Shown here: positions 1,653 to 34,686 of the stretch, piece by piece | Layout: every line of letters starts with the position of its first letter | Position numbering within the stretch: position 1 is the stretch's first letter | From: Paraphysomonas bandaiensis | Taxonomy: Eukaryota; Protista; Chrysophyceae | Assembly (NCBI GenBank): GCA_965644295.1 | Contig: CBFFRP010000535.1 | Coordinates: 1-34,953, forward strand | Reading direction: 5' to 3' | DNA: 34,953 nt | Translations under genes and position numbers: made by a program | Notes under the pieces: model-generated | What the model saw: only the letters and a program-made list of their open reading frames with translations | Databases searched by the model: none | What the model was told of the DNA's origin: nothing

Positions 1653-2100
1653 GCTAAACTAGTGCTTAACTTTAATACCCTACAATTTTGCTCTACGAAA
1701 GCTGCTTGTGCATCACCGCAAGGACGAAGGTCCAACCACTTTCGCCCTCTGTCCTTAAAGGTGAACTATAGCCCGGGTGAGTGACCTCACCAGGAAGCCC
1801 AATACCACGGATGCCCTTGAGGTGGGTCCATTTCCGGTTATTCCCTGATGCCATTATTTTGTTCGTCAAGGCCCAAAGACGTCCCTCGTACCACACAAGC
1901 ATTTCGCTATGAGTGGGCAGAACAATATTTGCTGACTATATTATATACTATTCGATTAGGGTTAGGGTTAGGGTATACAGTCTGACATCACGAAAAGGTG
2001 CGAGTCCGACTTTGTTGAGGGTATATATATATGCGGCTCACGTTAGTTTTCTGGAGGGATATATCCGGTACTTATCCCAGAACACCACAAAAAGGTGCGA
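1653..2100 (-). mobile_element. Rearranged copy of the ~550 bp retroposon (1653-2020) plus a partial duplicate (2022-2100)
   Basis: Matches the family (GCTGCTTGTGC, TTCGTCAAGGCCCAAAGACGTC, AAAAGGTGCGAGTCCGACTTTGTTGAGG ending at 2020); internally interrupted by a short telomeric tract. Confidence 0.85.
1945..1974 (+). repeat. Short interstitial telomeric tract ATACTATTCGA-(TTAGGG)3
   Basis: TTAGGG x3 at 1956-1973 preceded by ATACTATTCGA at 1945-1955. Confidence 0.95.
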
Positions 2101-2448
2101 TATGTATATACAGTAGTGACTCGAATGCTGTGTGTACCAATAAAATACATAATGTTGGTAAGCACGACGTAACCCAAACCTAAAATAACAAATCTTCAAA
2201 ACTTGTTGTGGCATTTGCACTCTTCAGCAAAAACGAAGAATTTTTAAAGACAATTCACTTGTACTGACATCATCATTTTATTCTTTTCATCAATATATAT
2301 AACGTGAAGTATTTGATAAACTGCTTTTACTGCAGAAAATTGACTCATAATTGCGTTTTCCCTTAAATTATGTTGTAATTAATGATGATGTTGTATAATA
2401 TATAAACTCACTTTAAAATTATTTTCCAACAGATAGTTTTTTATCCAA

Positions 2449-2823
2449 CCTAATATTGATGTTGAATGTGTGTATTTTTGGTGCCAATATATCCGAACGT
2501 TCTGATGAAACCCAATTCAGGTTTAAATATAGTTATATATATATTATTTATCCACGGATAATCAGGAGGCCATATTATTGTTCTGAAACTAGGTCAAAAA
2601 GCCCGAGCCTTAAAATTTGGACAGGAGACTATACTCCTTCTTACCCCTTGTGGTTACATATTGTAGCTTATTCTCAAGATGCTGAATACCTAATATCTAG
2701 ACAGTACAATTAAGATAGAAGAGAGGTTCTATTTCACCCCCGAATATTGAAGTTGAATGTCTACATTCTACATTAGCCCGATGTTAATATGAGCGTTCTG
2801 TTGAACCCAATTCAGGTCAAAAA
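2449..2823. repeat. Degenerate ~80 bp direct repeat pair
   Basis: AATATTGA(T/A)GTTGAATGT ... CGTTCTG(A/T)TGAA(A)CCCAATTCAGGT at ~2449-2528 and ~2740-2823. Confidence 0.7.
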
Positions 2824-3152
2824 ACAATTTTTTGAGACAAAATGACTCCTCAATTATGCATTAGTTTCATGAAACCTTCACACCGAAAGGTAATATTATT
2901 CATAATAATTTTCCAACCGTTAAGATATCGAATTTCATCAGTGTAATCAGATCAATCATATCGTCATAAACGCAATAAAAACCATAATTTCATAATATAA
3001 CGTAATAAAAAATTGGTAAGATAGTTGTTTTTCGTATATAATTCGAGTCATTCCATGACATGATGTCGAAGGACTACAGCGAGCATACTCCCAGCGGCTT
3101 GGTGGGGCTGGCACATTGCTGGTGAAATTGCTATATAGCGTCCTCTAAATAG

Positions 3153-4514
3153 TTAATAACTTGAAATAGATTGGTGCGCGAAAGCAGCAAGGTGCCCAGT
3201 ATGAGCGTGCAGTGTTGTGGGTCGATGTATGACGTGTTTACAAACATCAATATGACGCATCGCAACACCCTGCTCGAAGAAGCGACGACAAGTAGGACAC
3301 TGCATATAGGATTCATAAACGGGGTCAGTCCGGGGAGGACTCTTATGAGGAGCCATCTTTTTAGCCTTTTCCTCTTCCCTCATTCGAGAAATAGCTCGAT
3401 CCCACTTGGCCTTGGCGACTCGTTTTTTGGCTCGTACCAGACGTCTGCCAGCTATAGCAGCATGGCGAAGAGCTTCACTCTGATATCTCCACTTAGATAC
3501 ATCATCAGAAAAAGTTCCTGGGATTATTTTCCCTCCTTTGTGATGCTTTGGAGAAACAGCGGGTGGTGGTAACTTAGCCGTATCAGCAAGAAAAGCTTCG
3601 AGCTCTGTGCCTCTAGCTCTGGCAGAAGCAGAATTGTACACAGTTCGTGTGGAGCGAGAAATAACACCTCTCCGGCATACTGGTTCGTCGACGCGTCTGG
3701 CGGGGGTTTCAAAGCAACAGGAGCGGTTATGAACCTCTAGACGTGCTGGGGCAAAAGTGCGGTCGCAGTACTCGCACTTCACAAGGGGGATATCGTCCAC
3801 GTGAGCCAAGGACGCCAGGTGCCCAGAATGGGGGTGCAAAGTCGTGGGACGATGTTTGATGTTGGCACACTTTTCAATGTGTCGGTACCCAACGGACCTG
3901 TCGAATGTTCGTGAGCAAGTAGGGCACTGCACGTAGGTTGAGTATATGATGCCGTCGAGGGGACTCGAGGAGCGAGTTGGGTCAATCGGACGCTTGATCA
4001 TGAAATCTTCCTTCTCAGCTTTCCTCTCGGCCTTCTCCGCACGACGAATAGTTTCCTTATGAGCTCGCTTCATTGCCTTCATGCGGCGCCTCGCTGCCAT
4101 AACACCGTGGCGAAGAGCTTCTGACTCGAATCGCCACTTCGATACCTCTCCAGACAATGTGCCAAATAGAACTTTCCCACCTCTATGTTTAGGAGAAATA
4201 GAAGGAGGAGGGAGGTTTGCAATCTTCCGCTGAAAATCCCATAGATCAGTTCCGTAGGCTCGCGCATTGGCAGAGTTGTAAATGGTCTTCTTCCCCCGTA
4301 TGTAAACATTCCATCGACTCACCGGCTCATCCACCCGACGATGAGGGGTCTCAAAAGTGCAAGATCGGTTATGGACAACGAGAGACTTCGGGTAGAAAGT
4401 TCTCCCACAGAAGTGACAGGGCGAGAGGACGGGGTCCAGGGCGATCGGACCTAAGTTACGCATCTCAGAAATGACCAAATCAAAGCTGCTGCTGCTCTTG
4501 TTGTTGGCTCCCAT
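3153..4514 (-). CDS. C2HC-type zinc-finger protein (ZC2HC1-like), four fingers in two tandem modules
   Basis: Four CxxC-R.F-x(n)-H...C motifs (CHFCGRTF, CPTCSRTF, CEYCDRTF, CPTCRRFF); the two halves are clearly homologous. First ATG at 4514; the ORF-track start at 4607 is a non-ATG codon. Confidence 0.85.
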   Translation of the reverse strand: MGANNKSSSSFDLVISEMRNLGPIALDPVLSPCHFCGRTFYPKSLVVHNRSCTFETPHRRVDEPVSRWNVYIRGKKTIYNSANARAYGTDLWDFQRKIANLPPPSISPKHRGGKVLFGTLSGEVSKWRFESEALRHGVMAARRRMKAMKRAHKETIRRAEKAERKAEKEDFMIKRPIDPTRSSSPLDGIIYSTYVQCPTCSRTFDRSVGYRHIEKCANIKHRPTTLHPHSGHLASLAHVDDIPLVKCEYCDRTFAPARLEVHNRSCCFETPARRVDEPVCRRGVISRSTRTVYNSASARARGTELEAFLADTAKLPPPAVSPKHHKGGKIIPGTFSDDVSKWRYQSEALRHAAIAGRRLVRAKKRVAKAKWDRAISRMREEEKAKKMAPHKSPPRTDPVYESYMQCPTCRRFFEQGVAMRHIDVCKHVIHRPTTLHAHTGHLAAFAHQSISSY

Positions 4515-4929
4515 GGTAGAAATATGTAGTAGTTTAACGAATGGATTATGGTGGCTACATGTAGTGTTCCTGGTCTCGTAAACTGAACTTAGATATCCTT
4601 CCAACACCCTTTCTCACATCTGTATCTACATGTACACATAATTTCATACACAACACGACACAATCCCAAAAGAATACGACGTATCCAATCATCTTCAACC
4701 GAACACGCAATGTTTCTATATGGGTGTATAGGTGTATAGGTACGGTATGTGGGTATATGGGTACAGCAGTAGATATTTGTATGTATGTAGGTCTGTTGCT
4801 GTATACCTATAGGCTCTCTTTACGTGACGCACGGATACTGCTGTAGTATGCAGATATGGTAAGGGCGCTGTGGTCCTCTTAGCTGTTCGTTAGTTGAAGG
4901 GATACTATATCCATTCAATAATAGATGGT

Positions 4930-6844
4930 ATGGATAGCTCAAACACGATAGGCCCAGCTGCATTTATTATCTCATCTGCATTGTCGTTATTACGGGTAAG
5001 GTATCTGCAGGAAGCTAGAGAGAAGCGCATCTTCTGTTCAGACAGCGACAGGGAGAGAATCGGTGCTTACACAGCTCCCCCCGGAATATACGATGCCGTT
5101 ATTGTTGGTGCGGGACCCGCAGGGGCTACAGCTGCTTATTATCTGGGCAAACAAGGAAAACGCGTGGCGCTGATTGATAAGAAGTCTTTTCCTAGACCGA
5201 AACCATGCGGAGATGCCTGGTGCAAGCCAGCTCTGGACATATTGGAGGATATGGGCGTGTTGAAAAAAATGGAAGATGATGGAATTACACGTCCAGTTAA
5301 GCGTGGTGGGTTTATTTCTCCGTTTGGGTATCGCTGCATTAACACTGACGGTTCGCAATATGGGTCTGTCACTGGGTGCAAGACCTACGCCATCAAACGA
5401 TATATTGCTGATGAATATATTGTCAGGGCGGCCTGTGCATTTCCTACAGTCGAATTATTTGAAAATGTTGAAATATGTGATGTTGTGTACGTTCCGCCGG
5501 CAAGCAAAGACGTTGATACATTGCCGGGTCACCACCGGGTTATCACTAAGTCAGACACCCAGAATAATATATCCGGTGTGATGTGCCTTATATGTGACGG
5601 TTCAACTTCCTACCTCGCCCAGAAGTTAGGGATAATCCCAAAAGGTTCTCAGCCTGATGCTGTCTGCTCGCACGCTTATATCCAAGGCAATAGTCATTGT
5701 TGGGATGAAGCCGACGGTGTTATGATATTCAATCGCTCGATATTGCCTGGATACTCGGCACTGTTCCGACATTACAACGACGATATGTACTTCGGTGAGT
5801 GAAACAAAGCTGTGTACACTTCATTTCATCATACATATGATGTAGAACCGTACAAATGTAATAATGTATGATAGGGACGTATATTCTTCCTGGAGGACGA
5901 GCAACATCCCGTGCAATTGCTCCGTTTGAGAATGAAGCGATAGAAAAACACCCTTATGTACGGGATGCCTTTGGCAGTGCTTATGTATATGAGGTACGAG
6001 GGTATAGCCCATGTGCAAATAGGTTTCACTGAGGAGGTTTTCAGGAAAAACGTGTAGTGGCTCCAATACGCTGTGGAGGGGTAGAAAAATCGTTCACTAG
6101 GCAGCTGCTACTAGTTGGAGATGCTGCGGGACATGTAGATCCCTTGACAGGTGTGCGTGTTGCCTCGAAATGTCACCACTGTATTCTATTATTCCTAGAA
6201 TATATATTGATGAGTGTGGACACATATATTCAATGTACACCACGGTCATTTGGCCGTCAACTAGGATACTAAATATAATATGCCACAGTAACCACTGTTG
6301 CCCTAGTTTAACGATGTAGTATAGGTGAAGGAATTCACACCGCAATGTTAGCTGGTAGAACTGCCGCTGAATGTGTCGGGGAGATGTTTTCCTCCGGAAA
6401 CTTCACATTACAGGCATGTCGTGCTTACGGTACGTGGACCGGTGTGGAACATATGTGAATGAAATGTCGGGATGAATATGTCGTGTGTCTGATGAAATTA
6501 TATATACAGAGAAACGCTGCTACGACATATTTGGCTACGAATTCTTGTCATCTTCCCTGGCTGCGAAAATAATCTACTACTTCCCAATCACCTTAGACGC
6601 AGTGGCTGTAGTTGGCCAACGTCGTGGACAGGCTTTCTTGGACTTTTTTGGTGAAGTTATGACTGGAGTGCGCCCAAAATCCGACTTTGCGCAACCTTTC
6701 TTACTTCTTGAGATTACATTCGAGCTGGTTCGGCAGTTACTTATTCAAAATGTATTGATTCGAAAGGCTTTATTGCCAACAGATATTGGGATGGATATTA
6801 TCGAGAAGCAGAGTGGCAAAAAGAGAGGTGGGAACTACGCATAG
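4930..6844 (+). CDS. Geranylgeranyl reductase family FAD-dependent oxidoreductase, 5 exons
   Basis: DAVIVGAGPAGATAA (Rossmann), FPRPKPCGD, CDG, and spliced GDAAGHVDPLTG|EGIHTAM; GT-AG introns, first 5795-5874; stop at 6844; hydrophobic N-terminus. Start codon uncertain. Confidence 0.9.
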
Positions 6845-7355
6845 TTTATGTACATTAGTATCATGTATTCCTCGTAACTTATAAACCCAAAAAGCACATT
6901 GAAGAATATTGGTATGAATATTTTTAAAGCAATATACGATCAATCGATTAGCCTGGTCTCGAACTTGTGTTTTAAGGTAATAAAACGCAAATTATTTGTA
7001 TTATTTACAAGGTTAAGGTTCAATGGATAAGTAAAAACCAAATTACAGTTAACTAAGCGGTAGATAATATTCATTATTGGCAGCGTAGTGAAGTTGGTGA
7101 CCATGTGATCTTAACGAGAGGAACTAAAATGAAACATTTTAGTATCACTGTATTTGTAGTGTCGTTGAATCAGTTAGAGAAGCATTGTAGCATTACTGAT
7201 GATAGAGGTAGGTAGCGTACAATATCATAGGAATATATATAAACCCTGATATATCAGAAGAAATTTGATAACGTCAGAGCATAGGGTTGACTTCTACCTT
7301 CTACGTAGTCCTGGCACAAATTCAATCTGGCTTTTGGTTGTAAATCCAACCACAC

Positions 7356-7440
7356 CCTCAACAAAGTCGAACTCGCACCATTTCGTGATGTTTTGGGGGA
7401 TAAGTACCGGAGATATTCCTCCGGGAAACTAACGTGAGCC
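7356..7440 (+). ncRNA. Candidate HDV-like self-cleaving ribozyme at the retroposon 5' end
   Basis: Consensus of the copies: P1 CCUCAAC, P2 CUCGC, P3 ACC, L3 UUUUCGU, P3' GGU, P1' GUUCUGG, GG, P4 hairpin CCGGAG-AUAUUC-CUCCGG, CUAAC, P2' GUGAG. P1 has two mismatches in the consensus, P1.1 would be U-G only, and individual copies carry further substitutions. Confidence 0.55.
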
Positions 7441-7448
7441 ACAAAACA

Positions 7449-7932
7449 TATTGAAAGTCTTATTATTACATATAGGTGTTTAAAACCTGCACTATCTTAG
7501 TAGCGATATGAACGCTAGACAAACTAGTTAGACCTCTACCTGTAACTAATCAGTACACACTTTTTTTATCCTACTATTTAACGCTACGGAAGCTGCTTGT
7601 GCGTCGCCGCAAGCACCAAGGTGCCACCACTTCCGCTCTGAGTTCTTAAGGTGAACATCCCGGATGCTTGACTTCAGCAGTCAGCCCAATACCCCGGTTT
7701 TACCGTTCAGATGGGCTCATTCCCGGATGCCTGTTTCTTCGTCAGGGCCCAAAGACGTCTACACAAGTGACACTTATTGGTGTCCCTTGTACCACACAAG
7801 CATTCGGCTATGAGTGGGCAAAAGAATATCTTATGACTCTATTTGCGGCTCACGTTAGTTTCCCAGAGAGAATCTCTCCGGTACTTATCCCCCAGAGCAC
7901 AACAAAAAGGTGCAAGTCCGACTTTGTTGAGG
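7449..7932 (-). mobile_element. Retroposon copy with both termini, nested in opposite orientation in another copy
   Basis: TATTGAAAGTC...TTTGTTGAGG flanked by AGCCACAAAACA (7437-7448) and AGCCACAAACA (7934-7944). Confidence 0.9.
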
Positions 7933-8660
7933 AAGCCACAAACATAGTCAGCAGATATAGTTCTGTCCACTCATAGCCGAATGCTTGTGTGGTACAAGAG
8001 ACGACACCAATAAATGTCACTTGTGTAGACGTCTTTGAGACTTGACGAATAAACAAGCATCCGGGAATGGGCCCACCTTAAGGGTAATCGGGGTATTGGG
8101 CTCACTGCTGAAGTCAAGCACAATATTCACCTCTTAAGAACTCAAAAATTTTGAAGTCAGCAGATGTCAGGTATATCAACATTCTGCTTGCTCACGGCAT
8201 TTTTTGCTTTGAGCGATATAGCGGAGGTGGTTGCACCTTGGTGCTTAAATAGTAGGATAATAGAGTTTGTACTTATTAGTTACAGGTAGACGTCTATCTA
8301 GCTTGACTAGTTTTCTTCTAGCTACTAAACAGACTGGTGCTGATTCTTAACGCCTATTGCTAATAATAAGACTTTCAATATCGAACCACATGGGTTCAGT
8401 ATTAATTGCTTAGAAATTACGCCATATAGCGTTTTCATGCAATGTATGGCGTTAAGTTTGATGTAGATGGTAATGTTCAGAGTTCAGATGGCCAAGCCTT
8501 CTACTACTATTATATGAAAGCTGGGCACCTGAAAAATCAAGTAATATCTCACTATAATAGTGGTGGAAGCTTGTTGCAAAGAAGAATGAACCACAAGCAG
8601 GTACTGTGAAGGTAGTTTAAACTTTAAATACTTTACCAACTAAACTTACCTACTAGCCTA

Positions 8661-9449
8661 TATTGAAAGTCTTATTATTATTTAGCAATAGGCGTTAAGA
8701 ATCTGCACCAATGTAGTAGCTAGTTGAATGCTAGACATACTATTTATTTGACCGCTACCCATAACTAATCAGCACAAATTCTATTATCCTACTATTTAGC
8801 GCTACATAAGCTGCTTGTGCGCCGCCGCAAGCACCAAGGTGCGGCCACTTCCGTTCTTAATGTTGATTGTGAGTTTCGCCATGATCGTGTGTCCTAGGAC
8901 TCACTGGCGCGTGGTATCAGGGGGTCTCCCCTTGGGATGAGATTCCACCACTGGCTCTGAGGTATGGGGTTCTGTATTAAGGTCCTGAGTGTACCGAGTG
9001 CTAGATGTGTGTGCTGAGAGGTGGAATGTGGCGTTCTTTCATTGCACCGTTTGGGCCTTAGGCATAGGTAGAGTTGCCGGAGACGGCGTCGTTGTCGAGG
9101 GCCTGAAGGTTTCGTGCGGGCTGGTGATGTGTTCCTGTGTGTATGAATGGTGGGGTTCGTGTGTGTGGTGGGCGGTGGTCCAGCCTCGGGTCGTCTGCAG
9201 ACTCCTAGTAATTGTAGCACCCTTGGGCGTTTCCATTGCAGTCTACGTTTTTGACGCGGTCGCGGGAGTAGCCTAGGTGGTCTTTTGTGTAGGGTAATAT
9301 ATCGTCGACTTCGATCTTGGATCATGAGCTTTGCTACAGCAAAAAGCGGGAGAAGCAGGCTGATGACCGCTGATTCAAGGTGCGCAGACCTTGCGGTGTC
9401 AGGGGCTCACGGATGTCATCTCCAAAAACCATCTCGAGTTGTGCAGTGT
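8661..9449 (-). mobile_element. Chimeric insertion: 3' ~200 bp of the retroposon (8661-~8858) fused to ~590 bp of unrelated GC-richer sequence
   Basis: Whole unit flanked by TTACCTACTAGC at 8646-8657 and 9450-9461. Confidence 0.75.
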
Positions 9450-9472
9450 TTACCTACTAGCTAAATCCTACT

Positions 9473-9722
9473 TGCTCGCACCTTTTCGTGGTGTTGTGCG
9501 GGATAAGTACTAACTAAAGTTAGCAACATATATATATAGTCAGCAGATAATTTCTGCCCACTCATAGCCGAATGTTTGTGTGGTACAAGGGATACTAATA
9601 AGTAATAAGTGTCACTGTGTCTTTGGTGGACCTTGACAAATAAACAGGCAACCGGGAACCGGAAATGGGCCCACCTCAAGGGCATCCGGGATATTGTGCT
9701 ACCTGCTGAAACAGAAGTTGAC
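9473..9722 (+). mobile_element. Partial retroposon copy (5' half), ending next to a Copia LTR
   Basis: CTCGCACCTTTTCGTGGTG ... GGGCCCACCTCAAGGGCATCCGGG matches the family. Confidence 0.85.
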
Positions 9723-9728
9723 ATTATT

Positions 9729-10430
9729 TGCTAAGGCTTGCTGTTCTCAATTCTCAAATTGATACGATTGAAATTATAACATTATATGATGAAGAAACTA
9801 AGTTGTATTCGGTGTGTTCAACACCAATCATATACTTCTAAAATGTACAAGCCACACACGAAGTAGTCGTATCCCGACTAGTCACCAAGTTATACTTCAG
9901 TTTCATGCTACAATATAACATACTAATAACATAATATTATAGATATATCTTTCGATCCTTGCATCTCACATAATACTGCACTCAATTGCAAGCATATAGA
10001 ATATTCAGATCTCAGCACTCCCCCTCAATTGAGTGTTGTATTATGACACCTCCTAGCAATTGTATGACTGAGAAAAAAATTCTTGACAGTAAAATAGACT
10101 CATCTCTAAGTGTAAACCTCTATCTAAAAACCCAGTGCCTACTTGTGTCTTCTTTTATCTCTTGGTCCCTCATCAATCACCTCAGTAGAACTCTTAATTT
10201 ATTTCTCCTTCTCTGCTCCATGTATGATAAAGCAACCAATGACTTTGTGTAACTGTCTGCTGCTTGTTGAGATGTATGCACATGCACTAATTTAATTGTA
10301 TTGAACTGATTGGGATCCACATGCTCTCTCACCATGTGCTTCGACTTCTTGTAAAACACTGGGTTTTCGGTCAAATCCTGGGTACTCTGGCTGTCGAATA
10401 GTATTAGTGTATTGTAGGATGACATATATT
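9729..10430 (-). mobile_element. Ty1/Copia 3' remnant: RNase H fragment, PPT and 3' LTR
   Basis: DSQSTQDLTENPVFYKKSKH...IKLVHVHTSQQAADSYTKSL (Copia RNase H); PPT TTGAGGGGGAG at 10028-10018; putative 289-bp LTR 10017-9729 with termini TGCTGAG...CTTAGCA. Confidence 0.8.
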
Positions 10431-11677
10431 ATAACTGTTAATAAAGCTCTGCTGTACAGGGGACAAAGTGCGGTACTGAACATGCGATCTTGACTTGGAG
10501 GTGAGTGGCCCCAACCTCCCGCACGCAGAAGCAGAACTACGGGCGGTACTATTACGAGTGTCGCACGTGCTTTCATTTGTTTTCTCTGTGGGGCACGCTG
10601 CGAAGAGGATTGTTCTTGCTATTTTTCCCTCCAGAGCTTTCTAAATGAAGTCAAAGAAAGCGAAGTATTGGGACTCAGTGGCTGTTGAGGCTCTACACGA
10701 TCTTTGGTCTCCAATACATGCACTGATAAGATGTTGCATAATTATAGGGTGAGTTTTATTTGTATTGTCTGCTTTACTAGTGGGTGATATGGAGCAATAA
10801 ATGCTCGAACAACAAGCCATTCTGATTAGCAAGGATTACATAAACACAGACGCAGGGAGGAACTGGGTTAGGAAGAATGTCTGAGCGGTATGGGCGCACC
10901 CCGGCTTCCCTGGGTTGGGGTGAAATCAAAGTCGTGCCTTTCTATCTCAATCTTTCATGGCATCGTCATGATAATGATGAGGCTGATTGATATCATGCAT
11001 ACCAGGCCGGCTTATGGATTCGTAGTGTCACGGTATCCCATACAGTCAGTTCGCGTTATGGTGGATGGTGTGTACCATAAGCCATACTGTCCACCACAAC
11101 GGCACCATCCACGATTAGATAACCCAGGTTTTTGTTTAAAAAACCACTATAACGGGGATATCCACCATACGTCGTCCACCGTATCCGATCTAGATATTCA
11201 CTTGGCTGTGCGTTGTGCAGATACAGTAAAAAACAGAGTACATTCCGTATACCAGTATACCGTGTACCATATACAGTACCCTTATCTGGAATGGAGGAAC
11301 GTTCGAAACGTTATGTAAGAAACCAAGTATCAGGAGCAGCAGAGTGTTGCCAGTTATTTCCGTATGTGTGATGCATTCATATCGTCACGAGCGGTATTTT
11401 TGTTATGAAACGATCAACAAAATCAACATGAAGTCAGAGGCAGTGAGGAGCGACGAAGTCAACACTACCCGCCTGGTGCAGTAGATCATATATAGCTATC
11501 TGCCCAACACTGTTCACAGCTCTTATTATTATCACTCACTCACTAGTCTCACGTACCCCTCTACCATCACATGCAAAGGCTTTAAGTATCAGCATTTCCA
11601 TATCTTGTGTTTAAAGATCGGTTATAATCAGCCGTGTATGTGGTGTATAGGGTTATAGTTACGACACTTTCATTCTA

Positions 11678-14041
11678 ATGGGCTGCGGCGCTAGTTCGCA
11701 GAAAGTGCAGTGTGGTGATAGGCCCAATGACCCGTCCAACACGAGCGTTCCAGTGAAAAACGGAAAAGTCAGTAAAGCTAACAAAAAAGCGGCTGTGTTG
11801 GAACAGAACGCTAAGGCGCGGAGGTCTCAACAAACGAAAACTGAAAATATGGTTCATGAGGAATATGAGAGAGGTCAGTCATCAGAGTGCTAACCTATTT
11901 CATACTCATTGGATATGGCAACAGATATTACTGAATTTTACGAAATAAATAATGGGGCCATATTAGGAGAGGGAATAAGTGGGTCAGTACGGATGTGTAC
12001 ACACAGGGAGGTAATTTTCGACCAGTAAATTTGTAACTGTCAAGAGATCTCAATTGCGTAACTTGTTTGTAGACTGGCATTGAATATGCACTTAAAACTC
12101 TTGATAAGTCAAAGCTCAAAGCAGATGCCCTCAATAACCTTCGACAGGAAATACGTATCATGGCTCAGGTTGACCACCCCCATATTATCCGCCTCCATGA
12201 ATGCTTTGAAGACAAGAAGTGTATTAGACTTGTACTGGAGCTGTGTACTGGAGGTACGTATGGTATTGATCTGGTATGCTTTTCGGTATATTAGAGATGT
12301 TATATGAATTATTATTTCGAGTTTTGATTAGATTGCAGGTGAGCTGTTGGACCGACTTCATGCGCAGTCTGGTCACCATTATACTGAGCGGGTAGCTTGT
12401 GGTTATGTCCAGACAATGCTAAGTGCAATACGCTATTTACATGAACACAACATTGTCCACAGAGGTACTTCACCTTATTTGTAATGTGACTTTTTGGAAA
12501 TGTATATATGTATATCGACTTATGTTTGTTGGGTTTGTGTTATGAATATAATATATCAGATCTTAAGCTGGAAAACTTTTTATTTGAGAGCACTGACGAC
12601 GATTCTCAAATGAAGTTGATCGATTTTGGTCTCTCCCAGTTCTTCGAGGAGAACGAGATAATTGTGAGCCCTGTGGGAACCCCATACTATGTGGCCCCTG
12701 AGGTATTGAGTGGGGCGTACGCAAATAAATGTGACGTGTGGTCAATTGGTGTGATTGCATTCATGTTACTGTCTGGTACACCACCTTTTTACGGCAAAGA
12801 TGATCTTGGAACTTTGCGCTCAGTACGAGCAGGGAGGCTTGTCTTTGAAGACAAGTACTTCAAAAATATTTCTATGACCGCAAAAAATTTTATTTCCTCG
12901 TGTTTGACAAAAAATGTTGAGAAGCGTCCAGATGCACGTACTCTGCTAGGGCATGATTGGTTTCGAATGCTTCAAGTAGATATGCCATCTCCATCGTTGA
13001 ATGTATGTGCTAGACTAGTTAGTTTTGAGAAACGTACAGCTTTGACGAAGTTGTGTATGGAAGTTGTGGCACACACTCTAAGCTCCGAACAGATCAATAA
13101 CTTAAGGACACAGTTCAAAATGCTCGATACCGACAATACCGGAGAAGTAAGTTATACGGACTTAATGCACGTGCTCAAGCGACAGGGGAAAGTGTCAACT
13201 GCCAATATGGAGCAAATATTTGGCAGCACCTCTTTTAGTGATTCGACGAAGCTGAAGTACCACCAGTTCTTGGCAGCCACATTGAGTAGACAGGCAATCA
13301 CTGAGAACAACATGAGGGTGGCATTTGAAAAGCTTTCGAAACATCATGAGTGTATAACGTTCGAAGATATCAAAGACTTACTGGGGAAAGAAGCCACTGA
13401 TGAGGAAATTCGAAACATGATGCGTGAAGTGAATGTTGACCCGGACAATAGCACCATATCATACGATAATGTAAGTGTATACAGTCTAGTATGCAATAGT
13501 TTTATCTACTTGACCCATATTCTGTGCATATTGCTTAATAGATATATATATTCGTGCGGATATGTCTGAATATGAATATTTGATAATTTCGTTGAACAGT
13601 TCAAGACCATCATGCATGGGGGTGACCAAAGCCCAATGATAAATACACCATACAATAAGTACAGAAAACAAATCAGTTTTGGTTCACCATCGTCAGGTAT
13701 ACAGTACAATTGTCGCACTAAAATGCTCTCAGTATATTCACCCCTCTGACAATACCTCTGACATTTGTATAGGTGGCTCGCGCAAAATGTCGGCCCCGAG
13801 AAGTGGTAGAAGTACCCCCTTGGCGAGAAAAGCTATCACTAATCGGGCCATGTCTCTCTCTTCTCCCACTGAGGAAGATGTGCCATCCGCTGAAAGTTCG
13901 TCCTCTCCAATGAGGCCGGAGACACTTGTATTTGAGGATGACGCTTCTTCACAATGTGCTTCGCCATTAGTCAAAATGCCCGAACAGGAGAATGATGATT
14001 ATATACCCCCCCCGCCCAGTTCACATCCGCCGTCTCCGTAG
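11678..14041 (+). CDS. Calcium-dependent protein kinase (CDPK-like), 7 exons
   Basis: MGCGASS acylation motif; spliced kinase domain LGEGISGSV, YALK, HR|DLKLEN, DFG, GTPYYVAPE, DVWSIG; EF-hand DTDNTGEVSYTDL plus degenerate EF-hands; Ser/Pro-rich tail; all introns GT-AG. Confidence 0.93.
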
Positions 14042-20406: not shown

Positions 20407-20929
20407 CAAGGCGAGTCATTTTTATATTTAATGATAGGTGGAAATGATATCAGAATTTTAGAAGCAATGATGTGTACCTCTACGTCTAGTGTATTCTCAG
20501 GTGTAGATCATAGTTTAACAATTCCATGTTGGTGGGCTCGCGGTGATGGTAACATTTTAATATCTCTAACGAATAATCAGGCTTTATATACGAAGCGTAA
20601 AATTTTATTCAGGGCGATGAATCAGATCAAACGCTGTTGTAGTCACCTCGTAGCAATATGTATTTCAACTTAAGTATAGTGCCATTTTAAGTTTGTAGTT
20701 GTGTGACAAAATCATAGTCGCTATATATAATATAATGCACAGAGTTCTATCAACTTTTGACAAAATTGGATAGTGAAATAAATTAAGTAACTGAACTTGA
20801 TATCAATGCTCAATGCTCTAATTATAAATAATTATGATCAACATGAGATATCATTCATTGTCATTCGCCAAATTATACTATAGCAATAGTATATTGTTAC
20901 AATACTATAACACTTTGTATTGTAGTGTA

Positions 20930-20973
20930 TATTGAAAGTCTTATTATTTAGCAATAGGCGTTAAAAATCTGCA
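20930..20973 (-). mobile_element. 44-bp severely 5'-truncated retroposon copy
   Basis: TATTGAAAGTCTTATTATTTAGCAATAGGCGTTAAAAATCTGCA flanked by TGTATTGTAGTG at 20916-20927 and 20974-20985. Confidence 0.85.
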
Positions 20974-20985
20974 TGTATTGTAGTG

Positions 20986-21241
20986 AATGTCTCATATTAT
21001 TATAAGCAATATATAGGCGTTTAAGAGAGTCAGAACTAATTTAGCATTGCAATTTAGCTAACTAGTGCTTAACTCAGATATCCTACTATTTAGCACCACG
21101 AAATCTGAAACATCACGGTGCAACCCCTTTCTCTCTATCACTCAAAGCAAACGCAGTGAGCAAGCAGATTGTAAATATACCTGACATCTATCTGCTGAAT
21201 TCAGGATTTATAAGTCCTTAAGCAGGTGAACAACCCGGGTG
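20986..21241 (-). mobile_element. 5'-truncated retroposon copy (second subfamily)
   Basis: Direct repeat of ~21405-21650 (AGAGAGTCAGAACTAATTTAGCATT ... CTCAAAGCAAACGCAGTGAGCAAGCAGA). Confidence 0.85.
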
Positions 21242-21246
21242 AACAG

Positions 21247-21900
21247 AATTTACATTATACTACTGTTGAAAGGAATTTATGTTGAGAGTTGCTCAAAGTT
21301 AAGCAATTAAATGTTGAAATTTAAGTACTTACATTTTATCCCATTCGTTAAAAGTTTTTCAACGGCGATGTTACTGGGGGACTCTGAATACACAATAGTA
21401 GAGAATGTAATATATTAGCAATTGGCGTGTAAGAGAGTCAGAACTAATTTAGCATTACTAACTAGTGCTTAACTTTGATATTCATTCTACTATTTATTAG
21501 CACTACGAAAGACGTTTGTGCGTCACCGCAAGCAACCACCTCCGCTCTATCACTCAAAGCAAACGCAGTGAGCAAGCAGATTGTTAATATACCTGACATG
21601 TCTGCTGAATTCAGAATTTATGAGTCCTTAAGTAGGTGAACAGCCCGGGTGCCCTTGAGGTGGGCCCATTCCCGGATACCTGTTTATTCGTCAAGGCCCA
21701 GCCAAGGACGTCTACACTAGTGACATTTATATTAGTGTCCGTGTTGTACTACACAAGCATTTATTTGGCTATATGAGTGGGCAGAAACTTATCTGCTGAA
21801 TATATATGCGGCTTACGTTAGTTTCTCGGAGAAATATCTCCGGTACTTATATACCCCCCAGAACACTATACGAAAAGGTGCAAGCTCAACTTTGTTAAGG
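21247..21900 (-). mobile_element. Full-length retroposon copy with 3' extension
   Basis: 5' end TTTGTTAAGG at 21891-21900; shares the extension with 16020-16178. Confidence 0.85.
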
Positions 21901-21934
21901 GAGTGTCATAATGTACATTGTAGAGAATATGTTA

Positions 21935-22400
21935 GTTTTGGACCTGGCGGGTCACTCTCGTGGGGTTCCAAACTTCAGTATACTGTAGTTACTACATCGA
22001 TTATGCAAGCTGAGTGTCAATGTCTTTTTAACGGATTACAGGAAATAATAATAAATAATAGTATATGTGGTTTCAGGGGGTGACAGAGAGGAGAAATGTG
22101 GGGCTGAAAATTGACGAACCCACACCATTATTCCTGGATAGTCAAAATGCTCAGGATAATATTATATATATAATATCTAAAATCCAGTGCAACATGAACA
22201 ATCAAAACAACGTAGTGAGGTATATATCAAGTAGTAGTATCATGATGTGATTAGTAGGGAGAATGTGTGGATCCCGAACAGTTTTAAATTATAAATAAGC
22301 GAAATTAATTCATGCTAGCAGTCTACAACAGATGGCTGATATATATACCAAGGCGTGGTTGCGGGGTCCAGTGTATATTTATTGATGAACGAAATCTTAG
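21935..22400 (+). pseudogene. Degraded Ty1/Copia RNase H fragment
   Basis: SLSWGSKLQYTVVTTSIMQAEC...LQE, WF...PTPLFLDSQNAQD, NPVQHEQSK, QMADIYTK across frameshifts. Confidence 0.85.
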
Positions 22401-22572
22401 GGGTAAACTAAAAGACTACTGAACGGATTATAGCAGAGCGCAGAGGTACCCAAAAGGTAAAGAGAGCTCGTCGTAACTAGCTTTTGGAGTCATACGTGTA
22501 CTTTGAGGGTCGTCGATGGTTGCGTATCCGATAGCGATAATCTTTATCATAATAAATTATTCTAGAATGAAG

Positions 22573-23360
22573 AAGTCGAGGTAATATACCAAAACCTGCT
22601 CGTGAAATATTTGTGGTAGGAAAAGGGTATAAATATGCACAATAACTAAATATGAAGTTATATATATATAATATATAAATATATTATTATAGTGTGAAGA
22701 GTATTGTTTATATTATATCTTTCTACTTTCCTATAATATATATATATTATATTATTTCTGTGTTTTACAGCAACAATAGAAGTCACTGATTATACACATA
22801 CATACATATATATTATTATCATACATGCATAATATAATATATTATTATATAGTTTATAAGCTACTCCGTCAAACATGGGGTGCTATTCTTTGACGAAGAA
22901 GTTAATATATTTTTTATATAAAATAGTATTTTATAATAATATAATATAAAACAAACACTACCACTTAATATTATTATATAACGCTTACAATAATATCATC
23001 TTATATAATATATATATATATATATTATATACTATAACCTTATTTTTTAAGAGCCTCGCAAAAGTAACTTGCCGCTAGATTGTTGTCATCATGCTGTCCA
23101 TCATTATAATAATATTGATGTCGTATTCAGGCTATTCGGTTGGAGTGTTTACAATCTCAATATAGAGGCAGGGGCAGCTTGTAATGCAATTAAATACTTC
23201 TCTACTCTATTAACAACTATTATTGCGACCTTTTCTTTATTTTTAAACTCTCAGCAGATACAAATTAAATCACAGTAAAATAATATACTGCAATACTTAG
23301 ATATTATATAGAACTTGGTGAAATTGCTTTTTAACAGGTTTTGGTATATTACCTCGACTT
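22573..23360. mobile_element. MITE-like element with perfect 26-bp terminal inverted repeats
   Basis: AAGTCGAGGTAATATACCAAAACCTG (22573-22598) and its exact reverse complement (23335-23360) around a very AT-rich non-coding interior; no clear TSD. Confidence 0.75.
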
Positions 23361-23447
23361 ATATAATATTGTTAACTACATCCAATAATGGAGTGGGAGT
23401 GTTGAGTTCTACAGTTTATATATATATAGTGCAATTGAAGTGAGTCA

Positions 23448-23997
23448 TATTTAAAGTCTTATTATTAGCCATAATATATAGGCGTTAAGAATCAGCAGCA
23501 GTTTTGTAGCTAGAAGAAAACTAGTCAAGCTAGATAGACGTCTACCTGTAACTAACTAGTACAAACTCTATATTATTCTACTATTTAACTACGGAGGCTG
23601 CTTGTGCGTTGCCGACCACCTCCGCTCTACTGCTCAAAGCAAACGCCGTGAGCAAGCAGAATGTTGATATATACCTACCTGACATACATATATATTATGC
23701 TGACTTAACATTTTTGAGTCCTTAAGGTGAACCTCCCGATACCCCGGTTACCCTTCAGGTGGGCCCTGTCATGGATGCTCTTGAAGTGGGCCCATTTCCG
23801 AATGCCTGTTTATTCGTCAAGGCCCAAAGACGTCTACACAAGTGACACTTATTGGTGTCCCTTGTACCACACAAGCATTAGAATATAAGTGGGTAGAAAA
23901 TTATCTGCCGACTATATATTATGCGGCTGACGTTAGTTTCCCGGAGAACGTATCCCGCAGAACACCACGAAAAGGTGCGAGTCCGACTTTGATGAGG
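23448..23997 (-). mobile_element. Full-length retroposon copy (550 bp)
   Basis: TATTTAAAGTC...TTTGATGAGG flanked by GAAGTGAGTCA (23437-23447) and GAAGTGAGTTA (23998-24008). Confidence 0.9.
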
Positions 23998-24739
23998 GAA
24001 GTGAGTTAATAGTGTACGATAGGTGAAATCAACTCATAGAGGTGCAATGGGTGAATATAGTTATAAAAAGGAGATAAATTCAGTTATACTATATAGATGT
24101 ATGACTATATATAAGATTATATTAGGCTCTATTATATTAGAGGTGTGACTTGTGAAAATATATTATATTATGAAAAACAGCTGTTTCTGAGAACAAATGT
24201 TCACCAAATGTTGCATGAATATGTTGTGAAGTGTAAAGTAGTGTTGAGATTAATAATAATAATTCTTGCCTAAAAGTACATGGCGTGCAACAAAGCAAGG
24301 TTAAAGTTTATGTGGTGTAGAGCTAGGTTAACTTCAGTGTAATGTCCAATTCTAACAATTACCTTCAGTTTTAATTAAGCTTAAACCTTCCAAACTATCC
24401 AAACATTCATGTTGATTTCTGATATTCTTCAGTGATGCCATTTCTTAATTTCATCATTGCGACTACTACAATTCTATGGTAGCTGAGAAAATAACACCAT
24501 GTTGGAATAACTATTTTCTACACAAAATGCATGATATAATCCACTTCAAGCCAACCACAATTCTACTAGTATTGAACAAATGTCATGTGTACGATAATTA
24601 CGAGTACAGTAACACAGCTTTATCCGAAATCATTATTTTCTCAACTTAATTTATCAATGCGCTACTACGGTTATATGTATCTACACTGAGCATTGCGCTA
24701 TACATAGGAATATCAACATAACATTAGTCGATGATAGAA

Positions 24740-26134
24740 TTATTCTTTAGCCTCACCATCCCACCAGCAAGACTCATCAAAGCAAACTTCCGGGTCTACG
24801 AAACCTACGTTCTTCCCGTTCACTTGAGAGGACAAGTACTCGAACTCCCAGTCATCCGACCGATATGGCGTCGGAAATACAATTCCAGGGGCGGGGATGG
24901 GGAGTGCAGCCAGAATATCATCAATATCTCCCTCGTACATGACATTTTGTACATTATCGAATACAATATTTTCACACGGGTTACCGGGGTCGCACAGAAT
25001 AATTCCAGGGCCTTCAAATATTGGAACTGTATCAACAGCAAATACATTTCGGAAATAAATATTGCGTATCGTTACCAAAGGTTGTGTGGGACATATTGGA
25101 ATAAATGGGAATAAAAAGTTGCACCCAGTTCCATTTGATCCATCATTGGGCTCATTTTGCTGCTGAGGACCGATGTATATGGTCCACCACAGAGCCTCAC
25201 GTATTACGATGTTTTCATAGAGAATATTCTCGATCATACCAGAACCCTCTTCACCAGGGTTGGTTTTGATATATATGGCCTTCAACGGCCGATACATGGT
25301 TGTGTCTCGAAAAGTCACGTTTCGTATGCAATTCCCGTGTACATTAGGCGGAACACTTCCTATTGTCAGGCCGGTCGAATATGTAATATTGTTGTTGTAG
25401 GCAATGATATCACTCGCACAAATACAGTACTTCCAGTTGCTGTGGCAAGGTTTTGGGACGATTGCATCGTCATAGTTAGTAATGTTGCAGTTATAAATGG
25501 TCACATTAGTAGCGGCAATATCAATTCCATCGGTATTAAGGGGATACGTGACGGAATCACGACCATGGCCGCGGTCCACTGAACTGTCAATAAAAATCGT
25601 GATATCGTGGACTACAATATCTGCACAATCTTTGAAATAAATAGAGAAACGAGGAGAATTGAGGAAAAATGCATCCTTAATAATTATATCCGTTGAATGA
25701 TAAAAATATACTAAGAAAGGTCGGTAGGACAGTCCAAGGTAAGCACCACGCCACCATTTCAACCCTTGCCCATCTACGATTCCTTGACCTTGAACAGTAA
25801 TTCCATGGCACTCAACAAACCAGAATTGGGCGGTCGTGTCTGGATCCCAAGCAGGAATATAGTCGGAAAATATTACTTTACCACTGATTTGAATTGTCAC
25901 ATCATAAATGTCAGATACGTAGACGCCCAGCATATAGTACTCATTTCCACCTGATATTGTAACTACACGGTCCAAACTAGAGTTAGCAGCAACCAGTGCA
26001 TTCACCATAGCTTCCGAATTAACTCGTGCGGTGTGAAGGTCGTATGAGTTGGGCTTCGCACCATATTCCTCAATCAGAATTGAATTGACAGCTGCCACAA
26101 AAAATAAACAAAGAGCTGCAATATACTGCGCCAT
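24740..26134 (-). CDS. Secreted glycoside hydrolase family 28 (polygalacturonase-like), intronless
   Basis: Signal-peptide-like MAQYIAALCLFFVAAVNS from ATG 26134; GIVDGQGLKWW, NSPRF, NTDGIDI, NYDDAI, GLTIGS, IKT. Confidence 0.9.
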   Translation of the reverse strand: MAQYIAALCLFFVAAVNSILIEEYGAKPNSYDLHTARVNSEAMVNALVAANSSLDRVVTISGGNEYYMLGVYVSDIYDVTIQISGKVIFSDYIPAWDPDTTAQFWFVECHGITVQGQGIVDGQGLKWWRGAYLGLSYRPFLVYFYHSTDIIIKDAFFLNSPRFSIYFKDCADIVVHDITIFIDSSVDRGHGRDSVTYPLNTDGIDIAATNVTIYNCNITNYDDAIVPKPCHSNWKYCICASDIIAYNNNITYSTGLTIGSVPPNVHGNCIRNVTFRDTTMYRPLKAIYIKTNPGEEGSGMIENILYENIVIREALWWTIYIGPQQQNEPNDGSNGTGCNFLFPFIPICPTQPLVTIRNIYFRNVFAVDTVPIFEGPGIILCDPGNPCENIVFDNVQNVMYEGDIDDILAALPIPAPGIVFPTPYRSDDWEFEYLSSQVNGKNVGFVDPEVCFDESCWWDGEAKE

Positions 26135-26257
26135 GTCCACTGCAACAGATCTGAAATCCAGAAACTTCTCCCACTTAATACAGTTGACAAAAGAATTGAA
26201 TGGCAATTAGGGTGTGTTGAGATGTGTGTGATTCTTCTGCTATATGTACAGCAGTAT

Positions 26258-26260
<3 letters not shown>

Positions 26261-26290
<30 letters not shown>
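26261..26290. repeat. (AT)15 microsatellite
   Basis: Direct reading. Confidence 0.95.
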
Positions 26291-26294
<4 letters not shown>

Positions 26295-26892
26295 ATGGTG
26301 TTCTTAGTTCTTACTCGCACACAACAAAAGAACATGTGTACCAGTGTATTCTGCTGTATGTATACAGCAGCCTTGCAACACTTTTAGGTACTGTATGTAC
26401 TGCTGTACCCGGTATAAGATATACGTATACACTGCACCTGAAAAACACACTAGGAATTCCTACTATATGGATGTCTCTCCATAGTATACCATATATACGA
26501 AGTACTTGCTTATACATACAAGAAAGAACTGTCGTGAAGTGTGTTGGACTGAAGTGGATATGTGTGTGCAGATTCTAATTACACTGTAGGGTGTACCTAC
26601 GACGTACTATTCGGCTCCACAGATGGTACGAAATACATACATACATGAAATGGCATCCCAGCCCACTCCCACTCGCTCCCTCAACTGTAGCATGTCATAA
26701 CAGTATACACTAAGATATTTTATATGGCATTTACACTGCATCTTACACCTGAGGGTCAACAGATCATTTTAGTGTCAAGAGACCACCAGAAAACTATTCG
26801 CTATATGGAACTCCTGCTAATAGTGCTCCCGAACATTGAATACGTACAATTTTGGTTCCCTTCAGCGTTGATAAGATATTCCCCTCCTGATA

Positions 26893-29800
26893 ATGCCGGA
26901 TGAGAGCAACATTACTGTTGAATTGTCGGAGTCAGACATCGCATCTGAGTTGCAAGAGCTCCAAGTCGAATGGGCTGATTTACTTATGAATGATGACATT
27001 GTCATCGACATACCGCAGAAATGTGACTTGACTTCCAGTGAGAAAGAGATATTGGCCGGACGATGGTATTATTTCTCTTTGCAAAGAATGTCATGATAAT
27101 CCTGTAATGCTGTGGATGTAGGTTTGACGATGGGGTACTTGGCTGGAAGATTGACTACCCCCAGGTTGACCAGCACCTTTAATGTTTTTCGATTTTACAC
27201 TGTAATCTGAATATATGAGTGTAGACTTTATTTCAGCTGAAGTGCTATCGTATTTCTCGATCCAGAGTATTCCTCCAAATGTACACTCTGATCACAATTT
27301 TGCACATGTGTACTCCATTTTTAAGCGAACATCGTTGTCCGTGGCACAGAAATCCCGATCACCTATCAATATCTTTGTTTTCGATGGAAAGACGAGATTA
27401 TATATCAGCCATTACAGTCAATTTCATCGATTTATTTTGTACTCTGGTATATTTGGTCGAAATTAGCTTGCGCTTAGCGGTCAACAACAGCAAGGGGCGC
27501 TTCAGCGAGCTACTTCTGTATAAGGACAAGTGGATTTTCATACGCCTCTTATGTGTGTCCCTTATATTCATTGATAGCGTAGTATGTTTGGTCACACAAA
27601 TACCCGTTCGATTTGGGAGGTGCCTGATCCCTGTGATCTATATTGCACGTAGAAATAGTTTGCGCCAAATGGTTCATGGTCTATTTCTGTCAGTCATAAA
27701 TTCCTTTCCAATTCTCATGTTCCTTGTTGCGGTCCACTTTTTTTGGAGTTTTCTGGGGTATATAGTGTTTCGTGGTGTATATGTGGAGTATGGCGATAGA
27801 TTTCATACTTTCGGCGATGCGATGCTTACAGTTCTCCAGAGTGCCACTTCCAGATCGTTCGGTATCTTCGCACTGATGCCTTACTATGAAATAACCAGCA
27901 CGTCTGCTCTATTCTTCTTTGCTCTCACTGTTACTGCTGATTTGATTTGCGTTAACCTAATTGTGGCAGTCGGATTTTGGCAATATAAAGGTTTTTCGAA
28001 AGTTCTGTTCCGACGTCTTCTGAGGAATCGTCGGCAGGCTTTTGTTGCTATTCACGACCTTCTCAGTGACGAAAGGGGGTTCATATCTAGAGATAAATGG
28101 ATAGCTTTCTGCTCCAATATTCGGGGTAAATACAGTGTGACTCGACAGGTGGCTGAAGTTCTCTTTTCATTAGAATGTGAGAAGATGAATACAAAGGAAG
28201 GGTTTGACTGTATTGACTCTATTGGTTTGTTTCGAATCTCGGCCTTGCTATCTGCCCGAGTTATTGTTGATATTTCTAGGCCTGAAAATGGCATACCTTA
28301 TTCTTCGCGTGGTTTCTCTTCTCTCACTGAAGAATGTCTACAGAGACGGAACAGTCATAAACCCGCTGTGTCTTATCCAAGTTTGGAGAAAGTGCAGAAA
28401 TATATAACACATAGGAGATCATACAGTGACCCTTGTATGAACCCATGTCATTATGTAATAGATGAGGAAGTAAATGCAGTGCCTAGGCACGAAAGTCCAT
28501 TGTCTTGTGCGCTGTCAGAACCTGCTGCAATCCAAGGAGTGCGTATAGAATGTCGGTCTAGAGTAGATAGCTCACCTGCATCTTCAACTGATGTTCGTAC
28601 GATGGATGAGTTTGAAATCAGTGCTGCGGAAACAAAGTCAACTAGTACCATTGAGAAGATGTATTTTTCTATGCGTCTCCGAGTCGTACAAATGATGAAG
28701 TATAGTATAGCACTAGAACGAATTCTACCACAAAAGTGTTTGATTGAGCGCTTCCGAATGACTATTAATCCTTTTGATGGTTTTTTTTTTGCAGTAAAGT
28801 TACTGTTGGCCATTCAACTTGTATTTATGTCACAAAGGCCACAATCTATACAGTGGATTCGAATCGGATGGGTGCTCGAAGCACTGCTGTGGTTAGAGAT
28901 GTTTATCTTTATTTTTGCTTGGGGATTTGTGGTGTACTTCAGGCGCGGCGGGTTTGGGTATGTATTTTCACTGAACGTCCTCACTCTCGTGTTCATGTCG
29001 ATGCTTGGTACAAAAAGCGGTACGGGATATCGTAGCACACCGTACTCTTGTGTATTGATATTTCAATCCGCAAGATATTTAGTACTCCTTCGATACGTTG
29101 GTGACTCTGATATTTTTTTGTCGTTAGTCCCACTGCTGTTACGTGTACTGTTTATTATATTTTGTGTCATATACTTTTTCTCAGTGATTGGGTACAGTCG
29201 ATTGTGCGGGGTGTTTAACAGTGACCATGTACACAGCGATTCAGATGACGACTCAGTATTATGGTTGAACTTTGAGAGCATGTTTAACTTCGACTCTCTA
29301 CTTCAAACTATGTACACCTTGTTCTATGTAGCTATGTTGGGAAACTGGACGTTTATCATGGATGCTGCTGCTCGGACTGAGCGATTACCATCTCTTCTCT
29401 ACTTTTATTCCTTCCGCTTGCTAATGGTTGTTGTAGTAATTCCCATAATGTTTTCGTTCATTATACAAGAATTCGTTACAAAGCGAGATTATAATGCGGC
29501 AAGTAAAGGTACTGGTTGCATTCTCCTCTCGAATCATCTTGGCTTCGTTGATGCCAACCATCGTGAAGAGAAAGGCACAAGTGCTGGCGGAGATGATAGA
29601 TCCACCGACGAAGCAGTAAACATGGCTCTTAAACGTGTATTACTCAAACGAAACTCTTCTCCTGTTAATCACCAATGCTGTGTAAATAGCTACGGTGAGG
29701 CCGATCCCAACGTAGTCAATTGTCACTTCTCCTCTCAGATTCTAAAACATCGGAAATCTAACGTTAAAAGGCTTTCTCTGCATAACATGTTTACAGCATA

Positions 29801-30134
29801 CGCTGACGGAACACTCCTTGGAGATGATGAAAAGAAAATGAGTTGCAATCTACGTGAATATGAGATGCCAGTTTTTAATCGATCAAAATGCCTCTTCTCT
29901 ACAACTAGCAGCAAGTATTCAGTGCTCATTGGTGAAAAATCAACCTCTATGATGACTTACTGGTCGAGTGACTCGACGAATGCTATGGTCGAATCCTCAT
30001 CTGAAACCGATAAAGAAAAAGCTCATGTTCTTGAGCGGTTACTAATGGAGACTTTAAATTTAATAGCGAGCGAAAGGAAGAAATTCGAACAACTGCTGTC
30101 CGACTTGCACATATCATTAAAGGAATATTCATAA
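26893..30134 (+). CDS. Two-pore channel (TPC)-like ion channel, 3 exons (26893-27064, 27121-27163, 27237-30134)
   Basis: Two multi-TM repeats; S4-like RFGRCLIPVIYIARR; pore I FHTFGDAMLTVLQSATSRSF; pore II NFDSLLQTMYTLFYVAMLGNWTFIMD; in-frame GT-AG splicing links the 26893 ORF to the 951-aa ORF. Confidence 0.8.
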
Positions 30135-30206
30135 ATTTTTTGGTGTTGTGAAGACATTCTTATAGCATTTCGTCTTGCTTAAAAACATTCTCTGCATACT
30201 ATTCGA

Positions 30207-30218
30207 TTAGGGTTAGGG

Positions 30219-30259
<41 letters not shown>

Positions 30260-34565: not shown

Positions 34566-34686
34566 AATCTTTCAGTATTAACACATATCTTCCCCCCATT
34601 TCCATGGCACGAATGAGCTAGAACCTTTCCCCCTAGGACACCTCATATAAGAACATCATCTGCCACATCCAGTTGCCCATTAATCA

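Follow-up and report, generated by a model that had tools for sequence, protein, structure and literature searches.

Telomerase of ciliates (Euplotes, Tetrahymena in vitro) places a non-telomeric 3′ end at a preferred position of its RNA before extending it, and the new telomeres are found in a fixed register. Ciliates also possess the breakage signal Cbs, a sequence that pre-exists in germline DNA, is located at a distance from the site of telomere addition and directs cutting. The case that appears closest to the one described here is that of the TERC-ITS of vertebrates, in which interstitial telomeric repeats are bordered by segments that derive from the telomerase RNA by reverse transcription; 41 such loci, carrying varied domains of the RNA that are often in opposite orientation, were identified in 30 vertebrate genomes (PMC2246262; PMC8537989). 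Copying of telomerase RNA outside its template is known only from these few dozen vertebrate loci, which are rare and irregular. The present analysis was performed on a stretch of 34,953 nucleotides from Paraphysomonas bandaiensis (Chrysophyceae), hereafter the window, which is the whole of contig CBFFRP010000535.1 (C535). As pointed out in the original prediction, the same 11-base leader, ATACTATTCGA, is present at 1945-1955 (site 1) and at 30196-30206 (site 2) of the window, with TTAGGG directly after it in both cases. Most of this leader is very probably a stamp, copied by telomerase from its own RNA, beside the template, during the capping or patching of breaks. From the sequence, repaired breaks that bear the stamp appear to number well over a hundred in this genome, and the stamp also points to a candidate gene for the telomerase RNA.

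The arrangement resembles that of the TERC-ITS in several respects: hexamers are joined to a non-telomeric piece of telomerase RNA (here via the candidate RNA of contig C144), the insertion at a break appears to have occurred in one step, with the filler and microhomology typical of end joining, and the simple model proposed by the authors for a Xenopus locus corresponds to the arrangement found here (PMC2246262; PMC8537989). In contrast to the TERC-ITS, the same piece is found here in the same orientation and in the same register at more than 170 loci of a single 62 Mb genome, and the stamp is also present at most true telomere starts and inside telomere arrays, which argues for a normal start of this enzyme on foreign ends rather than a rare accident.

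The default alignment of ciliate telomerase is similar in that a non-telomeric end is received at a preferred position of the RNA, but this position is within the template and no foreign bases are added, whereas here it would be up to 16 bases outside the template and a stamp is left. The likeness to Cbs consists of a short fixed sequence at new telomeres; unlike Cbs, the block described here appears to result from new synthesis, adjoins the repeats directly and is not found in unbroken copies. The telomerase RNAs described in Diaphoretickes (plants, ciliates, Blastocystis) possess a short template (about 1.7 repeats), immediately preceded by a helix, and a type 3 promoter similar to that of small nuclear RNA (snRNA) genes, Blastocystis being the only stramenopile with a candidate in that survey (PMC8287931). 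The candidate on C144 shares with them a short template of about 1.7 repeats and a predicted helix just upstream, but it is without the upstream element of the organism's own snRNA genes and shows instead a weak likeness to the vertebrate core.

Recurrence and length spectrum of the stamp

Genome-wide counts were obtained from one assembly (62.5 Mb in 669 contigs). The leader followed by TTAGGG, a 17-mer, occurs 11 times, where about 0.01 occurrence is expected and the reversed control gives 0, in agreement with the earlier statement that its recurrence is not due to chance. The leader is therefore present at telomeric junctions other than those of the window. These 11 sites have nothing in common before the 11-mer or past the repeats, and the two flanks of the window are indeed unrelated, site 1 being located within a dispersed repeat and the flank of site 2 being unique in the assembly.

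The 11 bases could not be retained as the conserved unit, because the block that recurs consists of the last 4 to 16 bases before TTAGGG. Followed by TTAGGG, the sequence TCGA was found at 226 sites (control, 39), ATTCGA at 133 sites (control, 0) and the 8-mer CTATTCGA at 103 sites (control, 0); 174 sites (control, 1) were obtained with an 18-mer when up to 2 mismatches were allowed. Site-by-site figures (flanks, upstream bases and tract ends) were established on 100 of the 103 sites where CTATTCGA is followed by TTAGGG. The flanks of these 100 sites are unrelated on both sides, and no other motif common to them was found. A literature search combining the 8-mer with telomere terms returned nothing relevant.

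The 11-mer considered alone is found 63 times genome-wide, against 38 for the control, and 52 of its copies are without repeats; copies of this kind are thus close to background. For this reason, the third exact copy present in the window (10394-10404, minus strand), which no repeats adjoin, is probably a chance match. It was also considered whether this copy and that at 30196 (plus strand) could be the terminal inverted repeats of a 20 kb element, which was rejected on the basis of the background frequency of the bare 11-mer and of the lack of any likeness beyond the 11 bases.

The block exists in nested lengths, from about 2 to 16 bases, every one of which ends at the first TTAGGG, and the ATA form is a minority. 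Beyond the 8-mer, matches to the flank of the C144 locus (described below) continue for 1, 2, 3, 4, 5, 6, 7 and 8 further bases at 79, 55, 37, 22, 15, 9, 5 and 2 sites, respectively; extension lengths past the 8-mer therefore range from 0 to 8 bases, with a decay that is far slower than that given by chance or by random flanks. Over the 100 sites, the base upstream of the 8-mer is an A in 78% of cases at position -1, 66% at -2 and 65% at -3, followed by an enrichment in C. Among upstream triplets, AAA (36 sites) predominates, followed by ATA (11 sites), and CCCAAA is found 8 times.

At the other end of the tracts, only one full unit is present in 45 of the 100 cases, and the last full unit is followed by exactly TTAG in 29 and by TTA in 23, as expected of single passes reaching the end of the template. 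When arrays starting with at least 4 units were considered, the full 8-mer was found at about 24 of 41 starts, and most of the remaining starts carry 2 to 7 bases of the stamp or a slipped form that retains CCAAACTA. Two array starts (L114 and L115) read CCAAACTA and then directly TTAGGG, i.e. the stamp minus five bases, as if the growing strand had slipped between two AAU stretches of the RNA. Stamps are also found within telomere arrays, where they follow either TTA or a run of A. Several diverged copies among the 174 sites have a transition at the CG of the stamp as their sole difference, and thus fit old, inherited sites. At some loci (L022, L023, L029, L062, L069, L088, L111 and L128), stamped tracts of 2-5 units are followed by a recurrent sequence starting with TTATACGCTGTCCCCC, which looks like an element stacked onto chromosome ends.

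The candidate telomerase RNA gene

One of the 103 sites, at about 108.7 kb on contig C144 (L038/L110), differs from the others in that the full consensus is matched on both sides. On the minus strand, this locus carries the 10-base template CUAACCCUAA, which is complementary to more than one repeat; the longest stamps are exactly complementary to UCGAAUAGUUUGGGUG, which comes after the template, and the stamp CTATTCGA is the complement of UCGAAUAG, which adjoins the template. The template-bearing locus is present as a single copy in the assembly. Its 5′ flank is found copied too: at L105, a tract reaching TTAG is followed by 14 bases identical to this flank, and then by telomere repeats again. 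Copies of both template flanks are thus observed, at more than 100 sites for the 3′ flank and over 14 bases at L105 for the 5′ flank.

We consider this locus to be a candidate gene for the telomerase RNA. Among the origins proposed for the leader in the original prediction was a copied piece of telomerase RNA, and it is the one that agrees with these data, the last 8-9 bases of the leader (up to 16 bases at other sites) being the exact complement of the sequence located 3′ of the CUAACCCUAA template. The telomerase RNA candidate that was to be looked for according to the same prediction would correspond to the C144 locus, a single-copy locus in which the template and the complement of the stamp are found together.

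The Rfam model of vertebrate telomerase RNA aligns with the C144 locus on the right strand and with the template in register (15 bits, E 0.13-0.46); the alignment comprises a closing helix and, at the position of the pseudoknot, a pair of U-rich and A-rich stretches. In the minimum-energy fold (fold z -2.1), a predicted hairpin of 8 bp abuts the 5′ end of the template, which is the place expected for a boundary element. The RNA-binding domain of TERT was found once in the genome (94 bits). The C144 locus would be expressed as the telomerase RNA, and the enzyme responsible for the copying would be telomerase and not another reverse transcriptase.

A scan of metagenome contigs for homologues of the RNA gene returned none; besides several chance matches in bacteria, its only yield was two telomere junctions with the stamp. 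The two junctions are (CCCTAA)n tracts with the same 8 bases and do not come from this genome, as their flanks are either absent from it or about 65% like one of its gene families. These two matches are suggestive of an RNA flank that is common to relatives. One of the two contigs (L158, Ga0007834_1002755, 1-814) contains a stamped interstitial tract and a sequence that is about 65% like a tandemly repeated gene family of this genome (C297, C378, C309, C241 and C532).

Regarding the promoters of the U1, U2, U5 and U6 genes of this genome (L161-L174), the U1, U2 and U5 genes share a strongly conserved upstream element (core ATATTTTGGGTAAAT), located about 45-60 bases upstream, and a TATA box near -30. 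The U6 gene has a different upstream element, and several of the U1, U2, U5 and U6 genes are followed by ACAT-type microsatellites. A long TGTA microsatellite, which gives spurious microRNA matches in Rfam, lies at least 380 bases upstream of the C144 template (L110 1230-1800).

The two stamped sites of the window

The features of site 1 are all read on the plus strand. The left part of a dispersed repeat copy (1700-1947; at least 84 matches in the genome) ends with a short TA run that includes the ATA at 1945-1947. It is followed by the CTATTCGA stamp (1948-1955), which is complementary to UCGAAUAG of C144 and absent from the paralogues, by three TTAGGG units (1956-1973) and by a 50-base filler (1974-2023), copied for the most part from the 3′ terminal piece of this repeat family (1985-2021 is matched at 87-100% by the ends of other repeat copies). 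The right part of the interrupted repeat copy is then found at 2024-2100. The closest paralogue (L132) is 94% identical up to 1947, ATA included, continues with its own TA run and resumes at about 2024. Paralogues connect 1947 straight to about 2024, the short TA run being common to both sides.

As judged from this comparison, in which the empty sites are paralogues and not orthologues, site 1 is a 76-base insertion (1948-2023) made of the 8-base stamp, three repeats and the 50-base filler. Since the block is missing from the paralogues, the stamp was inserted and did not pre-exist. Marks of end joining are visible in the filler, which comes from the end of the repeat, and in the TA run on either side. 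The ATA of site 1 belongs to the old flank; the U run of the RNA could have paired with its last A. Stamped insertions are found in at least five copies of this repeat family (window 1700-2100, L131-L141; L043, L051, L071, L090). Those of L051 and L071 follow GGCAGAA at an identical internal position of the repeat, a hint of breaks recurring at one point or of the terminus of an element.

Site 2 is located downstream of an open frame of 951 aa with an ion transport domain (27279-30134, plus strand; Pfam PF00520, E 3e-23), the last gene before the array, whose stop codon is 61 bases before the leader. On the same strand, ATA (30196-30198) and the CTATTCGA stamp (30199-30206) are followed by a 4.36 kb telomere array (30207-34565) with the G strand rightward, which comprises 725 perfect units, an extra T at 30237 and a short TTAG unit at 34168, and which ends in TTAG. 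As the flank of site 2 is unique in the assembly, there is no empty site to compare; on the basis of the genome-wide statistics, the ATA most likely represents the former 3′ end, whose final A would have paired with the RNA. In the simplest reading, the DNA was broken 61 bases beyond the gene and an end in ATA served as the start for telomerase, which capped the break; the site would be, or would have been, a chromosome end.

The array does not reach the end of the contig, as 388 bases come after it. They represent an internal part of another dispersed repeat (34566-34953, plus strand; at least 40 copies, about 75% identity), truncated and joined to the array, and other copies of this repeat extend upstream of the join. 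The join at 34565/34566 is either a real fragment capture or a ligation or assembly chimera. At the end of contig C171 (L003/L046), a telomere tract stops at TTAG and is followed by A and about 22 bases, which we take to be a nanopore ligation adapter. The assembly would thus contain untrimmed adapters, and the natural end of the G strand would be TTAG. The array of site 2 stops at TTAG before the foreign piece, like the end of C171.

The following mechanism is proposed for both sites. The 3′ end of a non-telomeric DNA would not be aligned on the template, but would pair, over one base or a few, with the single-stranded RNA located just 3′ of it, the layout of the RNA being 5′-CUAACCCUAA-UCGAAUAGUUUGGG... 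Reverse transcription through this 3′ flank and into the template would produce new DNA that starts with a part of ...CCCAAACTATTCGA and continues with TTAGGGTTAG, and copying would halt at the boundary helix. Two outcomes can then be considered: telomerase would translocate and build a telomere, as at site 2, or the short product would be joined to the other broken end, as at site 1, where stamp, three repeats and filler are found. The 3′ ends in ATA, which are common in TA-rich DNA, would seemingly be preferred as primers, owing to the pairing of their A's with this RNA's run of U.

The other open frames retained in the window are ordinary contig genes, which encode C2HC zinc-finger domains (3153-4607, minus strand), a kinase with EF-hand domain, CDPK-like (12508-13569, plus strand), and a glycosyl hydrolase 28 (24740-26206, minus strand).

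Alternative explanations and implications

Several points weigh against an origin of the stamp in telomerase RNA. The Rfam score of the C144 locus is 15 bits, versus a family threshold of 70. Neither the upstream element and TATA box of the U1, U2 and U5 genes, within 1.6 kb upstream of the C144 template, nor a U6-type promoter at the locus was found; a promoter of the snRNA type (type 3) was ruled out at C144 by the absence of that element and TATA box, and a run of eight T about 60 bases past the template would be awkward for RNA polymerase III. The terminal status of site 2 is made uncertain by the 388 bases present after its array. The exact copies of the stamp are unequally distributed between the plus and minus strands of the contigs (70 to 33, and 11 to 0 for the 17-mer), also at more than 20 kb from contig ends (33 to 16). 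The same 2 to 1 skew towards the plus strand is found for terminal telomere arrays and the mismatched copies of the stamp are balanced (about 55 to 52); the skew looks like an effect of contig orientation or polishing. Finally, when A is present at -1 and a base other than A at -2, the ATA triplet is observed at 11 of 24 sites, versus 14.5% expected (p 2e-4), and this excess leaves room for a templated origin of its T.

The last point bears on the first alternative, in which a second allele or variant of the telomerase RNA would read UAU in place of UUU, ATACTATTCGA then being a full templated copy. In addition to ATA being three times commoner than background where -2 is not an A, an A is found at -3 in 16 of the 24 sites concerned, as if this position were still matched. 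However, the sole locus of the assembly reads the complement of AAA, the match to the next RNA base (C at -4) is continued at 2 of the 11 ATA sites versus 21 of the 36 AAA sites, and the ATA of site 1 aligns with the paralogue's own TA run. A second allele was considered as unlikely. A search for a second RNA gene with the ATA form found none in the assembly. Because of this result and of the counts at -4, it is moderately favoured that the ATA sites represent TA-rich ends that paired with the U run, a mismatch being tolerated. The boundary of the leader, set at 11 bases in the original prediction, is consequently not maintained: the C144 RNA reads UUU where the leader has ATA, a triplet which is old flank at site 1, and the 11-mer corresponds to a 9-base match to the RNA (ACTATTCGA) plus AT without counterpart in the RNA.

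According to the second alternative, which was also among the origins first proposed, the block would be a signal for breakage or telomere addition pre-existing in the DNA, as is the ciliate Cbs. Many telomere junctions, and likewise most array starts, indeed show a fixed block, but a signal of this type should be regarded as very improbable: the block is absent from the unbroken paralogues of site 1, always abuts the repeats, varies in length from 2 to 16 bases, occurs within telomere arrays too and is the flank of the template-bearing C144 locus. Moreover, the 11-mer without repeats does not exceed the background frequency, and the flanks share no other motif.

A technical artefact, i.e. adapter or chimeric-read sequence in a long-read assembly, could be suspected from the adapter remnant at one contig end (C171), from the plus-strand skew of the exact copies and from the tail past the array of site 2, which could be a chimera. 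Such an origin is hardly credible, as the 174 sites include diverged copies, some of which differ only by the CG transition, the same junction is found in two unrelated short-read metagenome contigs, and the stamp, which is unlike the adapter seen at C171, is matched at an internal locus of the genome, on either side of a template.

An origin as a terminus (3′ or 5′) of a mobile element able to target or to seed telomere repeats, comparable to the minimal mobile unit of the original prediction, is the least probable of all, because, even if elements stacked at telomeres exist here, a recurrent sequence follows short tracts in at least 6 loci and site 1 lies within a repeat, the 100 sites are alike over at most 16 bases on one side and share nothing but the repeats on the other, and no open frame or longer shared body is found beside the stamp.

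Beyond the copying of telomerase RNA at individual breaks, telomerase of this organism could start routinely on foreign ends outside its canonical template and stamp every healed break, with a possible continual or programmed re-capping of chromosome ends and a role of telomerase as a patch-maker. As most chromosome ends of the assembly are stamped, the ends of this genome may undergo breakage and re-capping, either continually or as a programmed process. This broader proposal is tentative and rather doubtful. If true, the stamp would be a natural and datable record of all healing events, and would reveal directly, in vivo, how primers are aligned on the telomerase RNA of a lineage for which none has been described. 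Copying that is regular, abundant and in register would provide a base-by-base picture of the way in which telomerase engages non-telomeric ends in living cells. The stamp leads directly to a candidate telomerase RNA, such RNAs being very hard to find by homology, and it may be used as a simple marker for healed breaks, telomere capture and telomerase-assisted end joining, in this genome and in metagenomes.

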